Source: Octopus sinensis
Taxonomy: Eukaryota
Assembly: GCF_006345805.1 (NCBI RefSeq)
Contig: NC_042997.1
Coordinates: 139,252,001 to 139,316,000, forward strand
Direction: 5' to 3'
Length of the DNA stretch: 64,000 nucleotides
The position numbers and the translations under genes were made by a program. Each line of letters begins with the position of its first letter. Positions within the stretch are counted from its first letter, which is position 1. Positions 24,935 to 62,700 of this stretch are shown here, piece by piece. The notes beneath the pieces are model-generated. The model had not been told where the DNA came from, made no database searches, and saw nothing but the letters and a program-made list of their open reading frames with translations.

Positions 24935-27900
24935 AATTTCTTTATTGCCCACAGGAGGCCAAACACAGAAATGGACAAATCAATTGATTGGGATCAAAAA
25001 TACGTTATGATTTTACATAAAATATGAATATAAAAATTATATAAAATATTTAAGAAATCGAATGAATTAACAATACAGAGACAACACAAATGTAGCCACG
25101 CTCCGAACCCACAAACCCCGATCTATCACTGGTTCTTCTTTTATAGCCTATTCACACGATTCCTCGCACGCACAACACACATGCACCATGCTTCCATCTC
25201 TTTTTGAACATACTCAACGACAGACACCTCTTCTCCAGCCACACCTTTCTTTTCAAATGAAAAGTAAAAAATGATCGTAAATCGTGGCCGGAGATAAAGT
25301 TGCCCTGTCTTAATCCCTTTTATCCTAGTCTTCCATACTGCCTCTTTCGCTATTGCTACAACCGTAAGAAAACAATTCTTACATTCGTTTGTTAAAACTT
25401 CCTGTGGGTCGATTTTTATAATTGACTCAGTCGACAGCCGTACTCTTCCTTCGCCGCACAACAGGTGTTCAGCAGAAACCCACATTTCAGATATCTCCGG
25501 ACACTGGATAATAGCGCGAGGGACGGTTTCCCTGTCTCCCCCGCATCTTGGACAGGTCGGAGACTGACGCTTACCATGTCTTGCGAGCTTATTCTAAACG
25601 GGCAAGGCACCTCTGTAACATTGCCAGGTCAAGGACATTTGGAAGTTGTCCAACGTTCTCAACCCGAATGTACGATGGAACAGGCTGTCCAGTTGAATAT
25701 ACCCGAGACCTAGAGTCGCCCCTAGGTCATCGTCACATTCCCAACCCACTATATAAAATACGAACCCACTATATAAAATTCGTGTAGAACCCCCGCTGCT
25801 GGCGTTGCCCGAGCGCCGGAATAGCAGGAGGGCCTTTATGCCATTCACTTGACCTCGGTTTACGAAAACACCAGGCTTCCTGTTCGCAAAAATTTTGAAC
25901 TCGGAGAACATTTGTCTGGCCAGTGGAGACCACACCCGTTCACCATCCAGGAGAATCCAGAGATGCGTCAACCTCAACGCATGTCTGCACATCATTAACC
26001 AAGGCATCCCCAAACCTCCTTTAACGGCTTTTGACAACAAACAGGACGTTTCACAAGTGGCGACCTGCACTTCCACAAAAAGCGAAATAGCTGTCTCTCC
26101 AACCTGATCAACCACGAATCCGGGCAGGGCACGACGGTCAGGCGGTAGGTAATGACCGATGCGATAAACACATTGGCCACTTCCGCCCTCCCTTTCAGGG
26201 ATAGCCACCGCCAAGACCAGGTCTTGACTAATGCAACCACCCTGCTCGAAACCTCCGTCTTCTCTATCTGGAGTTCTTCTCTATCTGGAGGCCTGGTCCA
26301 AACCAGACTCCCAGCAAGTTAACCAATCCCTCTGTCCAGCGCCCAACGACGCTATCTGAAGGCTTCGACTTGCCAACCCTGGTGCCGAGCTGCAAGGCGA
26401 CCGACTTTTCCTGGTTAATCTTTGCTCCTTCCACCGTCTTGTAAACCTCGATAGCCTTACCCACTTCATGTAGGCGTCCTACTGTGGCTACGCTGATAGT
26501 GATATCTTCCGCGTAATCTGTAATAAACTCCTCTAAACCTGGTTCTCTCGAGATGCCACTCAGCCTTCGTAGTAGGGGCTCAAGAGCCACCACATACAAA
26601 AGTAGTGAGAGCGGACATCCTTGACGAACGGAGCGCCTGATGCAGAACGGCTTCGAAAAGAAACCGTTCACCCGAACTATCGAGTCAATGTTGTGATACA
26701 CAGCGATAAACCACCAGAAGAAGCCAAGGCCTAGGCCGAACCGTGCAAGCACAGGTGGAGATTATCCTGAATAGTTCTACCTGGGATGGCACGTATCTGT
26801 GCCTCCCCGACTATACCATTCGCGACACGCGCCAACTTTTTGCTAAGACCTTGGCCAAAATCTTCACTTCTGCGTTTAATAGATTGATGGGCCTGAAGTT
26901 ACCTAAAACGCCCCCCTTGACCGGGTCCTTTCTGACCAACATCACTAACCCCCGGTACACAGATCTGTTGCCAGTTCGCGTACACGTCAGCCAGTAGGTG
27001 CCCGAACAAGTCTGGCATACATTTATAGAGCTCGTACAGAAGACCATCAAGTCCCGGCGACTTACCCGCTTTACAGTCGGCCATAGCCTCCATCACCTCC
27101 ACGGACGTCATTGGTCCTTCGTAAGACTTCGCATCCGATCCCGAGAGGCACGGCAGCTCGGCAAGAAAGTCCTCGAAGACTCCCCCACCATCAGGACCGC
27201 CATCATCCCCGAACAGCTGGGCGAAGTACTCCCGAAAGGCCTCACACATTTCCTCGGGTCCGTTTACCAAGACTCCATCTTGATTCGTCAAAGACCAAAT
27301 AGTGGAACTATTTCCTTGTCGAGCTTCCTCCACTCGGGCCCATCCAGTGGCCTTCATTCCTTCACTTCCCATCGCACGTAACTTAGCTCTGGCAATTCTT
27401 CCCATGTGTTGGGCTTCAAGATGCTGGTTCAACTCCAGTCTCTTCACCTTCACTTGGTCTGCATTACCAGTCCTCCAGGCTTCTACTAGTTTCTTAACTA
27501 GACCATCTCTTATTTTACGTCCCTTCTTCGCTAAACTTATGCTAAACCTAATAGACTGTTATTTTATGGCTCTTTTTAGGGCGTACCACCATTTGTTATT
27601 AATGATGGTACCTGTCAATGCCCTTTGTATTAAAATCTCGATCAGCTTTCTATGTTACTCAATCGCCAAAAGGGACGTATTGAGTTTCCAGTAGCCAGAT
27701 CCCTGTCTATGCAACTTATCTACTGTCAGCTTATAGGTAACCATCTTGTGATCACTGTAGCTGACAAGATAAAACTGTGGACACTTAGCTATGGACTTAT
27801 CTGTTTTTTCAAATTAAAACCCTATCTAGATATCTTCTGGAAGACCCGTCACTATTTGACCACGTCCACTGTGGAGTGTTCGGTTGTTCCAAATTATATA

Positions 27901-28375
27901 GATCTGCCAGCTGAAAGTGACTTAGCAGATCTTTTCTATTCATGTTCGAGCCAACACAATCTGTGTGTGCGTCACAGATTGTGATAAATGTCTCCTATCA
28001 GTACTAGCGAATGCGACGTGGCCAGGAACTTGCACAGGTCACGAAAATACTCACTTTGCGGGCTCATAACGTTGGGTGCATAAATTGAAACCAGTTTGAT
28101 TATCTTGCCACAACTGAATGTCAGGACGAGAACGACCAACCTGCCCTCTGGATCAGAAAAAAAACAACTTTTTCTCGGCTACCCGGTTTCTTTTTAGTAG
28201 GATAAACACCTCACCCAACCTCCCGCCCGTCTCGGAGAAACGAATTTCTCATAGCCGTTCAGAAGGGGAAGCAGATCTCTTGGCCCCTTCACCCGGGTTT
28301 CCGTTGCAACAATCACATCCAATTTTCTTGACCTGCTGTCATTTAGGAAGCACCCTTGCTTCCAGCTAGACATTA
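24935..28375 (-). mobile_element. 5'-truncated, decayed L1/Tx1-like LINE (ORF2 plus about 205-bp 3' UTR)
   Basis: Peptides WKQGCFLND..LDVIVATET, SPGLDGL, NFRPINLLNAEVKILAKVL, RQGCPLS, YAED, LSLKGRAEV and GGLGMPWLMM are homologous to the 14557 ORF2. Many stops and frameshifts. Confidence 0.88.
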
Positions 28376-28547
28376 AAAAATGCAAAAGTATCGCCTTATA
28401 CCTTTAGTTTTCTTATTCTACTATCTTAGCGCCGCTTGCCATTTTCTGTACTTATTACCCCATTTCATATTCCTCAAAACCCTCACTAATTCTGAATTGT
28501 AGCTTTAACATTTGCCTATATTTTGTAATTTTTTCGTTACAAGACTC

Positions 28548-28563
28548 AGGTTAAGAACCACTG
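28548..28563 (+). mobile_element. Orphan hAT/Charlie 3' TIR
   Basis: aggttaagaaccactg followed by gtaTAaag. Confidence 0.5.
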
Positions 28564-60529: not shown

Positions 60530-60946
60530 CTTTTTTCTTGTTTCAGTCATTTGACTACGGCCATGCTGAAGCACCGCCTTTAGACGAGCACCCAGGACTT
60601 ATTCTTTAGAAGTCTATTACTTATTCTATCGGTCTCTTTTGCCATCGGTTGTTAAGCGATGTTAACGGGGAACAAACACATACACACAAATATATACACG
60701 CACAGACATATATATATATATATATATATATATGTGTGTGTGTGTGTGTGTGTGTGGTGTGTGTGTGTGTATACATATATACGACGGGATTCTTTCAGTT
60801 TCCGTCTACCAAATCCACTCACAAGGCTTTGGTCGGCCCGAGGCTTTAGTAGAAGACGTTTGCCCAAGGTGTCATGCAGCGGGAATGAACCCGGAACCAT
60901 GTGGTTGGTAAGCAAGCTACTTACCACACAGCCACTCCTACGCCTA
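60530..60946 (-). mobile_element. SINE family A, full length
   Basis: Tail tttcagtcatttgactacggccatgctg through head ccacacagccactcctacgcc. Confidence 0.85.
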
Positions 60947-62254
60947 TTTATCTATAGTCTATTATTATTATTATGTTTACATAACTATATATCTATATGT
61001 TCATGTATATTTATAGTATTCATATATTCTTATATTTCTATATTATTATATTTCTAATATATCAATATATGTTTCAGATTGGACAACTTTTATTCTATCT
61101 TAATTAAACCCGTGTATGTATGTGTTAGTCGTAGTCTGCCTGGTTTGAACCTTTTCTATTGTATCTATTACATATATATATATATATATATATATATATA
61201 TGGGGGTATTTATATTTATATAAGTATATATGAATTAATATATTAATATATATATGTATGTATTGTGTATATGTGTGTGTATGTGTGTACATGTGTGTGT
61301 TTGCATGCGTGTGTGTGTGCGTACTTATAATTGATTTATCGTTCGAAAGGAAACCTCCTAAAAGTAAGTTTCTCTCTCCACCCTCCCTCTTTCTCTCCCC
61401 CATCTCTCTCTCTCTGCCTCTCACTATCTGTCCCTGCCTCTCTCTCTCTCTCTCTCTCTCTCTCTCTCTCTCTCTCTCTCTCTCTCTCTCTCTGCTTTTC
61501 TCTCCATCTCTTTGTACTTCTCTTTTTTTATTTCAACACTTTATATACTGCCTTTTCCTTTGCATAAATCCACCAATTGTATATGCGATGTTCTACAATA
61601 ATTGTATGCGATGCTCTATAACAGCAAGGAAATTCAATGCAACCTATAATTTCTTTATTGACGATCTTAAGATCTTACACTAGGAAAATCCACACTTCTG
61701 AGAGACAGCTAGATTTAATAACATTTTTAACTGTAATTTAACCAAGAAAACATTCAAACCTAATAGTAGAACTTGCGCAAACTGTATTGAATACCGAAGC
61801 ATCTATATCAACGACTTACTCTCTCTGAACGTCTCTCTCTCCCTTTCTCTCTTTCCTTACATACATACATACATACATACATACATACATACATACATAC
61901 ATACATACATACATATATATATATATATATATACTTACATATATATGTATATTGCGTTCTCTCTCTCTCTCTCTCTCTCTCTCTCTCTCTCCATCTCCCT
62001 CTCCCACTCTCTTTTAAGGAATGAATTCTTTGGTACTGATGTACTGATGAAAATATTTCAGTCAGTATTACTACGAACAAAAATGAAATTGCTAAGTCTA
62101 AGAAACATATAAGCAGTGGAAATTTTTCTCAAGCATAACAATGTCTCACAATGCATTTGAAGTGCCAGTTCTTGGAATAGTGATGAGGATATGAAATTAG
62201 ACAAGAGATGGACTTTCCCTCGATGACGTTAAAATTATTTCTACTTATTACAGG

Positions 62255-62700
62255 CACCAGGCCCGAAATTTTGGGAGAGAGGGATAGGCGATTACATCAA
62301 ACCGAATACTTAATTGGTGTTTATTTTATCGACCTGGAAAGGATGAAAGACAAATTCGACCTCAGCGGGATTTGAATTCAAAACCTAAGCCGGGAGATAT
62401 ACCTATTTCTTTACTACCCACAAGGGGCCAAACACAGAGAGGACAAACAAGGACAGACAAACTGATTAAGTCGATTATATCGACCCCAGTGCGTAACTGG
62501 TACTTATTTAATCGACCCCGAAAGGATGAAAGGCAAAGTCGACCTCGGCGGAATTTGAACTCAGAATGTAACGACAGACGAAATACGGCTAGGCATTTCG
62601 CTTGGCGTGCTAAAGTTTCTGCCAGCTCGCCGCCTAAGCCGGAAGAAATACCGCTAAGCATTTTGTCTGATGTGCTCACGATTTTGTCAGCACTTCGCTT
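62255..62700 (-). mobile_element. Older SINE family B copy split by a younger SINE
   Basis: Core at 62310-62385. Head resumes at 62635 with gaaataccgctaagcatttt. Confidence 0.75.
62404..62634 (-). mobile_element. SINE family B with Tx1-type tail and 18-bp TSD (2 mismatches)
   Basis: TSD taagccgggagatatacc (62386-62403) vs taagccggaagaaatacc (62635-62652). Tail rc tttgtcctctctgtgtttggccccttgtgggtagtaaagaaata. Confidence 0.88.

Follow-up and report, generated by a model that had tools for sequence, protein, structure and literature searches.

The window analysed in this work is a stretch of 64,000 nucleotides from the genome of Octopus sinensis (RefSeq assembly GCF_006345805.1, contig NC_042997.1, positions 139,252,001 to 139,316,000 of the forward strand). 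It is AT-rich and microsatellite-rich, and it contains two long interspersed nuclear elements (LINEs) of the L1 superfamily, LINE A and LINE B, together with numerous copies of a short interspersed nuclear element (SINE). The subject of this study is a 3′ tail common to LINE A and two of the SINE copies, and the partnership between LINE and SINE to which this tail points. LINE A lies on the reverse strand at 24936–28385. It is degraded and 5′-truncated, and a remnant of the APE endonuclease domain, the reverse transcriptase (RT) and the C-terminal region can be followed through many frameshifts; of the Pfam domains, RVT_1 is recognised. The final open reading frame (ORF) of LINE A stops at 25141, which leaves a 3′ untranslated region (UTR) of about 205 nt. 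LINE B, located on the forward strand at 12843–18190, is a complete element of 5,348 bp with a broken ORF1 region and with APE, RT and zf-RVT domains (Pfam Exo_endo_phos, RVT_1 and zf-RVT). The two LINEs share 67% nucleotide identity. The domain set, together with the match of a protein of a related LINE (P0006) to human L1 ORF2p across APE and RT (E=1e-72), places them in the L1 superfamily. In the protein database search the nearest sequences were an Argonauta hians protein and cephalopod contigs, with best identities of 48–50% for LINE A and 60–64% for LINE B. Membership in the Tx1 subgroup is plausible, and we treat it as a candidate assignment.

The resident SINE is a non-coding, dispersed repeat of approximately 220–230 bp, the body of which is detected by blastn about 18 times in the 64 kb. 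It carries a B-box-like sequence, GAGTTCAAATTCC, and a conserved central region. The MetaSINE superfamily is defined by a 66-bp Meta-domain located right after a tRNA-derived head (PMC4824008), and the main octopus SINEs have been annotated as tRNA-Core and tRNA-Deu (PMC8967140). Two copies in the window, T3a and T3b, end in a tail of the LINE A type. T3a is located on the forward strand at 33694–33914 and is flanked by a perfect 17-bp target site duplication (TSD), GGTATTTTAAGAAATAA (33677–33693 and 33915–33931). T3b is located on the reverse strand at 62404–62634, where it is nested in an older SINE at a GGTATTTC site, and its TSD of 18–20 bp contains two mismatches (62384–62403 and 62635–62652). 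Both copies are thus short repeats, below 500 bp, with TSDs of their own. They are identical at 203 of 231 positions and share the junction between body and tail (…AATCGACTTAATC…TTGTCYGTCC…) as well as diagnostic changes in the body. The remaining copies end in one of two other tails, T1 (...GGCCTTGTGCCTATAGTAGAAAGG, with ...CAAAATTTCAGGCCTTGTGCCTATAGTAGAAAGG) and T2 (...GGCCTTGTGCCAAAATTTGAAAC, with ...GAAATTGCTGGCCTTGTGCCAAAATTTGAAAC). Directly downstream of T3a, at 33936–34140, a unit of 104–107 bp is present in 1.9 tandem copies with 80% identity.

The 3′ tail of LINE A occupies positions 24936–24980 on the reverse strand (ATTTGTCCATTTCTGTGTTTGGCCTCCTGTGGGCAATAAAGAAAT). It contains a TTTGTCC/CTGTGT box, continues with the hairpin GCCT-CCTGT-GGGC at 24947–24959 and terminates in AATAAAGAAAT, without poly(A). 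When aligned with the tail of T3b, it is identical in 38 of 44 columns with one gap, and the comparison with T3a gives 36 of 42. In a blastn search of the window with the SINE, the 42-nt tail match has an E-value of 1.4e-7. The first-pass annotation of the window had noted the 38 of 44 matching positions and a similar match for T3a, and the alignments reproduce both. The SINE therefore shares its 3′ tail with an autonomous-type LINE of the same genome.

The segment 24936–24980 is the genuine 3′ end of LINE A and not a remnant of a SINE. Three other LINE UTRs, two from Argonauta hians (sequence L002) and one from a JGI contig (L003), align collinearly with the 3′ UTR of LINE A. All of them share an invariant GATTTCT block with LINE A and end in GGCC-CTTGT-GGCY-AATAAAGAAAT. 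A 5′-truncated SINE with a T1 tail is located at 24770–24934 on the reverse strand and abuts the LINE A terminus; it covers the body from about position 49 to the end and starts at GGTATTTCG. Because this fragment lies downstream of the LINE A tail and begins only at body position 49, the tail is not part of a SINE body. A 5′-truncated LINE 3′-UTR fragment of about 250 bp, belonging to a sister family, is located on the reverse strand at 2955–3203. Its tail, CTGTGTGC-AGCC-CTGTGT-GGCT-AATAAAGAAAC, terminates in the same way, and its end, CTGTGTGCAGCCCTGTGTGGCTAATAAAGAAAC, is a strong match to the LINE-A-type tail. The fragment lies within an (ATCT)n microsatellite, with 25 units upstream and about four downstream (to 3303), an arrangement analogous to the microsatellite targeting described for some LINEs of the Tx1 clade.

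The terminus of LINE B is fixed independently, since the element is bounded by a perfect 17-bp TSD, GGAAGCGACACCTACTG (12826–12842 and 18191–18207). It reads CTCTGTAA-GATT-TTTAT-AATC-ATAATAAAGATTTA and also lacks poly(A). Alignment of the LINE B UTR with the others using MAFFT did not reveal the tail. The homology of the LINE B tail is structural, and it became apparent only after the TSD had fixed the end of the element. Two further elements of about 125 bp on the reverse strand, 19311–19432 and 20768–20888, are 90% identical over this stretch, which is the only one that they share. The former has the tail GTGTAA-TGCC-TTTAT-GGCA-ATTTAAAAGAAATAAAGAAAG and the latter the hairpin TGCC-TTTAG-GGCA, and in both the hairpin is followed by AAAGAAATAAAGAA. 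They are either equally truncated LINE ends or copies of a very short non-autonomous element. Weaker versions of the tail motif had been placed at element ends at 2956, 18190, 19318 and 20774. The first of these is in fact a strong match, and the last two, with actual ends near 19311 and 20768, keep the hairpin and AAAGAAATAAAGAA. The end at 18190 is a TSD-defined LINE end with the same stem-loop architecture, but its sequence is different. An AATAAA hexamer is located within the last ~15 nt of every LINE 3′ end examined, whereas the SINE tails have AGTAAA, AATAGA or neither. The retention of AATAAA in the LINEs and its loss in the SINEs is consistent with transcription of the former by RNA polymerase II (Pol II) and of the latter by Pol III.

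All of the tails contain a hairpin with a 4-bp stem and a 5-nt loop, which is CYTGT in most of them and TTTAT or TTTAG in three. Folding of the tail had been proposed as a check for a conserved stem-loop, and this helix is the only one predicted by RNAalifold for 12 octopod-type tails. An outer helix, UUCU/AGAA, that appeared in two folds was dropped, as it is absent from the RNAalifold consensus. Base pairs were counted in 18 family-level tails, nine of them from SINEs and nine from LINE ends or from fragments presumed to be of LINE origin; the counting was also performed on a version with 15 tails. In the 18 tails, 95.8% of the cells form standard pairs, compared with 65.8% in shuffles. Compensatory changes are found in all four stem pairs. 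The covariation score is 0.79 versus 0.24 in shuffles, none of the 500 shuffles reaches it, and registers slid by 1–3 columns score at most 0.14. The stems observed are GGCC/GGCC, GGCC/GGCU, GCCU/GGGC, GCCC/GGGU, AGGC/GCCU, UGGC/GCCA, UGCC/GGCA and GAUU/AAUC. As in LINE/SINE pairs of the stringent type, a stem-loop is thus kept by compensatory substitutions in the LINEs and in the SINEs.

The T1 and T2 tails differ in sequence from the tail of T3a and T3b, as the first-pass annotation had stated for the other SINE copies, yet they carry the same hairpin. In T1 and T2 the stem is flipped in a compensatory manner relative to the LINE-A-type tails (GGC-CTTGT-GCC versus GCC-CTTGT-GGC). Four LINEs of the same clade, L005–L008, have 3′ ends with which both tails align collinearly over about 45 nt (GAC..CCCTCCCC..AAATTT..GGCCTTGTGCC). 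L005, L006 and L007 are assemblies from ENA, L008 is from the cuttlefish Acanthosepion pharaonis, and their RTs are approximately 50% identical to that of LINE B. An additional second hairpin and an A-rich end are present in L005, L006 and L008. With at most one mismatch, GGCCTTGTGCC occurs eight times in the window (0.29 expected), every time within a SINE tail. Because T1 and T2 share the hairpin and the collinearity with LINEs of the same clade, the whole SINE family, and not one subfamily, appears to be tied to this LINE clade. The tail swap then looks like a switch between sub-lineages of a single clade. In L005 (ENA contig ctg11195c, 348–13712) two full LINE copies form a tandem array with a repeat period of about 7.5 kb, the sequence between copies being identical, and each copy contains an ORF1 with a CCHC knuckle, a second ORF, APE and RT. 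The CCHC knuckle is a trait of Tx1 ORF1 proteins and serves here as a lead.

The T1 and T2 copies are spread over the window. Two of them with T2 tails (...GGCCTTGTGCCAAAATTTGAAAC) are arranged head to tail on the reverse strand at 50307–50695, and TRF reports a 226-bp "tandem" at 50259–50703. Others are located near 892–1030, 2400–2556, 3911–4120, 7232–7400, 7417–7610, 10835–11050, 11167–11385, 24560–24716, 50875–51090 and 62230–62388. SINE copies are very often arranged head to tail, or are nested at distances of a few bases, as at 7232–7610, 10835–11385, 24560–24934, 50307–51090 and 62230–62691, and at 14900–15320 in L002. This clustering suggests that insertion into SINE sequence or next to a SINE is preferred.

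LINE-A-type tails are also found on SINEs of Argonauta. Across 22 kb of Argonauta sequence, such a tail terminates six SINE copies that have the central region in common with the octopus SINE, and also three copies of a second SINE type whose body is different. The second type is located in L002 at 5119–5400, 13880–13960 and 14229–14330; its head and body (GGGTAACACGGCTGACTACGAATC...) differ from those of the first type, and its tail reads …GGTCCATTTATCTGCCC…GGCCCTTGTGGCC…. One of its copies is flanked by an 11-bp TSD, ATTTGTCAAAC. The LINE-A-type tail is old, because the Argonauta SINEs already bear it, and the direction of the tail swap therefore cannot be polarised. At 12014–12650 of L002, a second, 5′-truncated copy of the Argonauta LINE, which consists of the 3′ UTR alone, lies about 120 bp downstream of the first; both copies have the tail.

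The sequences at the insertion sites provide a further link between the SINE and the LINE. The motif (A/T)GGTAT follows all three ends of the LINE A type in the window, those of LINE A, T3a and T3b (24930–24936, 33913–33919 and 62399–62405), and the TSDs of T3a and T3b both begin with GGTAT. At a frequency of 9.3e-4 per position for GGTAT, the chance of two further coincidences is about 1e-6. In LINE A and T3b, two of the three sites, the insertion lies at an identical place in the body of an older SINE, at GGTATTTC, so LINE-A-type elements appear to nest preferentially into SINEs. The Argonauta junctions read GAAAT|CTAT in 9 of 11 cases, and the one TSD that can be delimited, CTATTTCAAGGAA, contains CTAT. 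L003 is followed by (ATT)n. In these small samples the pattern fits either a target preference of the endonuclease or microhomology priming with the 3′ end of the RNA. On either reading the SINE and the LINE appear, judging from their junctions, to use common integration machinery, and Kojima argued likewise for SINEU and Tx1-Mar (PMC4494074). The occurrence of GGTAT at all three LINE-A-type junctions suggests a shared target motif.

We consider it probable that the main octopod SINE family and a Tx1-like clade of L1-superfamily LINEs form a partnership of the stringent type. This conclusion is drawn from sequence comparison, and the molecular details of the partnership are proposed with less confidence than the partnership itself. 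The transcripts of the LINEs would end in a conserved 3′ module instead of poly(A). In this module the pyrimidine/CTGTGT box would be followed by the hairpin, with its G+C-rich stem of 4 bp and a pentaloop of the form C(Y)UGU or UUUAK, and then by an A-rich stretch of about 11–14 nt with AAUAAA. The SINE tail would be a copy of the module in three versions, T3 corresponding to LINE A and its Argonauta relatives, and T1 and T2 to the cuttlefish-type LINEs of the same clade. The ORF2 protein of the LINE would recognise the hairpin tail on the SINE transcript, presumably made by Pol III, as it does on its own RNA, and the SINE would depend on this LINE for its mobility. The same protein would nick a short preferred target, as the GGTAT at the start of the TSDs of LINE-A-type elements suggests. 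Reverse transcription starting from the tail would then give rise to TSDs of 11–20 bp and to insertions without poly(A). A wider claim may also be made, namely that the dominant octopod SINE family, with all of its tails, is driven by one coleoid-wide Tx1-like clade through stringent recognition of the 4-bp stem and pentaloop together with short integration motifs. This extension is tentative, and we would not favour it outright.

Several other explanations of the common tail were considered. The tail at 24936–24980 might be a leftover SINE tail beside a LINE that ends elsewhere or in poly(A), a view that draws on the SINE fragment directly downstream of LINE A and on the absence of a TSD that would fix the LINE A end. 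We find it scarcely credible. The tail is unattached to the body of the adjacent fragment, which lies 3′ of it, and blastn detects no similarity to the SINE body between 24978 and 25140. Moreover, the three independent UTRs collinear with that of LINE A have the same tail at their ends, and the TSD-defined end of LINE B has the same architecture. Both assumptions of the first-pass annotation on this point, that the segment belongs to the LINE and that the LINEs do not end in poly(A), thus hold for LINE A, and the termini of LINE B and the relatives consist of the tail module as well. It is also highly unlikely that the transfer took place in the reverse direction and that an abundant SINE supplied the LINEs with their 3′ end. 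The direction cannot be read from similarity alone, and the SINE copies outnumber the LINE copies, but the module is located at the 3′ end of every sampled LINE lineage of the clade (LINE A, LINE B, the 2955 fragment, Argonauta, L003 and L005–L008), and it sits inside long collinear LINE UTRs. Furthermore, the AATAAA expected for Pol II transcripts is found in all of the LINE ends and is lost from the SINE tails.

Chimeras are known to arise when the RT switches templates (see the discussion in PMC4824008), here from LINE RNA to SINE RNA, and the junction between LINE A and the truncated SINE is possibly such a product. T3a and T3b might accordingly be independent chimeric retrocopies and not members of a propagating subfamily. 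Their common body-tail junction, their diagnostic changes and overall identity, the separate TSD of each, and the homologous junction in many Argonauta copies make this origin very improbable. More weight is given to the possibility that the tail was shared by descent as a passive passenger and that mobilisation is relaxed, accepting any A-rich or accessible 3′ end, although we still consider it unlikely. Relaxed recognition is typical of L1-superfamily elements (PMC3472496). In the sole published SINE/Tx1 case, SINEU with Tx1-Mar, the tails are poly(A) and the two elements are linked by target preference alone (PMC4494074). The role of the tail in recognition by the LINE is, in the present case, read from sequence. 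A passive passenger is, however, difficult to reconcile with a stem maintained by compensatory changes in LINEs and SINEs across sequence-divergent lineages, with clade-matched tails on at least three SINE tail versions and on two unrelated Argonauta SINE bodies, and with the lack of poly(A) in all of the elements.

The stringent partnership itself has to be weighed against a number of observations that speak against it. The sample from the same genome is the 64-kb window, with two T3 SINEs and one degraded copy of LINE A. The hairpin has only 4 bp, it was first spotted by eye on some of the sequences that were later counted, and the folding energies of single sequences, expressed as z-scores against shuffles, are insignificant except for L006. 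For the head of the SINE, ARAGORN detected no tRNA, and Rfam gave no match to tRNA, 5S or 7SL. No octopod LINE with a tail of the T1 or T2 type was found among the LINEs sampled. LINE A has no TSD, and no SINE head was detected upstream of it, the alignments being no better than shuffles; a TSD for a composite insertion of LINE A and the SINE was looked for and not found. The LINE A/truncated-SINE junction could have arisen by an insertion with loss of target sequence or as a template-switch chimera. Beside the range of 15–18 bp given earlier for the TSDs of both LINE and SINE, the TSDs measure 17 bp in T3a, 18–20 bp in T3b and 17 bp in LINE B. The earlier proposal of a tail-specific partnership without poly(A) that arose by tail swapping is retained in part: a partnership is the best reading of the data, but it appears to involve the whole SINE family, and the swap is not polarised.

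Some features of the window and of the sequences compared with it lie aside from this argument. LINE B is embedded in direct repeats with a period of about 360 bp and 97% identity (12333–12846 resembles 18420–18846 and 18184–18567) and in an inverted pair with 99% identity (12052–12331 and the reverse complement of 18506–18783). The host structure may be a foldback-type element with terminal inverted repeats or a satellite, and the location of LINE B inside it recalls that of Tx1L inside Tx1D. A protein (P0023/P0285) entered in the database as [quoted passage not shown] is 41% identical to the C-terminal half of the LINE A ORF2 and originates from a 1.8-kb contig. It is probably the product of animal LINE DNA binned into a bacterial metagenome-assembled genome (MAG). 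When metagenome contigs were scanned for CYTGTGGGYARTAAAGAAAT, 16 matches were obtained, all of them chance occurrences in microbial DNA without the CTGTGT/GGCC context upstream. Two arrays of a 13-bp unit, CATTTTCATCAAA, with about 22 and about 15 copies, are located on the same strand at 38935–39225 and 40087–40279, approximately 860 bp apart.

That SINEs and their partner LINEs have a tail with a conserved stem-loop in common is textbook knowledge for the L2, CR1 and RTE clades (PMC4176376, PMC4824008). The eel pair UnaSINE1/UnaL2 and zebrafish ZfL2 (PMC4176376), and the bivalve SINEs with CR1 or L2 tails (PMC4824008), resemble the octopus case in several respects. The tail of about 40–50 nt is derived from the 3′ UTR of the partner LINE, a small stem-loop shows compensatory changes, a long poly(A) is not needed, and several SINE families share one LINE tail. 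The partners in those pairs are L2, CR1 or RTE elements, whereas the octopod partner has the domain set of the L1 superfamily (APE, RT and zf-RVT). The octopod tail also differs in its 4-bp stem, its AAUAAA terminus in place of a short tandem repeat, and the putative status of hairpin recognition. Structured L1-clade 3′ ends common to LINEs and SINEs have been described for ZmSINE2 and ZmSINE3 with LINE1-1_ZM and for SINEX-3_CR with L1-1_CR (Ohshima 2012, PMC3472496). These plant and green-alga pairs end in poly(A) repeats, while the pair described here is an animal one without poly(A), and it appears to prefer a target motif.

SINEU and Tx1-Mar of crocodilians (Kojima 2015, PMC4494074) have a common insertion-site preference, as the octopus elements appear to have, and in both cases insertions nest into other repeats. 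SINEU has heads derived from small nuclear RNA and a poly(A) tail, and its link to the LINE is the shared target; the octopus SINE, in contrast, has a tRNA-like or unknown head and is linked by a structured tail and a short junction motif. The insertion of Tx1L into Tx1D, and of Kibi and Koshi into (TC)n and (TTC)n (PMC4494074), can be compared with the 2955–3203 fragment in (ATCT)n, L003 next to (ATT)n, LINE B in a repeat and the GGTAT at the LINE-A-type ends. Unlike that of the target-specific Tx1 LINEs, the preference seen here is for a short motif in a handful of copies and does not amount to a demonstrated strict specificity. A SINE/Tx1 partnership and a stringent L1-clade tail each have precedent (PMC4494074, PMC3472496). 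It is the stringent partner from the L1 clade that is rare, the principle of tail sharing itself being textbook. Tx1 is nowhere mentioned in the text of a Repbase-wide survey of SINE/LINE similarities (PMC5786205), and no Tx1 partner was reported in a survey of bivalve SINE partners (PMC11481361). The partner LINE of the octopus SINEs is named in none of the papers found, although a prior description in Repbase is possible.

In octopuses SINEs make up approximately 11.6% of the genome (PMC13282606) and about 40% of the transposable element content (PMC8967140), and their expansion is octopus-specific. L1-Tx1 is the only L1-type group listed among the recently active LINEs of Octopus vulgaris (PMC13282606), which is consistent with the candidate Tx1 assignment, as are the apparent target preferences at the junctions. 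The tail and hairpin shared with L1-Tx1-type LINEs provide a concrete candidate partner for these SINEs and add an animal case to the very few L1-clade LINEs whose 3′ ends look stringent. According to one proposal, stringent recognition was the original state of the L1 clade and gave way to relaxed recognition separately in mammals and in plants (PMC3472496), and a stringent-looking L1-clade end from an animal bears on this proposal. The tail, the hairpin and the junction motif would aid in classifying the hundreds of "unclassified SINE" families of Octopus vulgaris. If the wider claim of a coleoid-wide clade driving the dominant SINE family is true, this clade would be the first animal L1-superfamily LINE shown to operate in the stringent mode, and the engine behind the octopus-specific SINE expansion would be identified.

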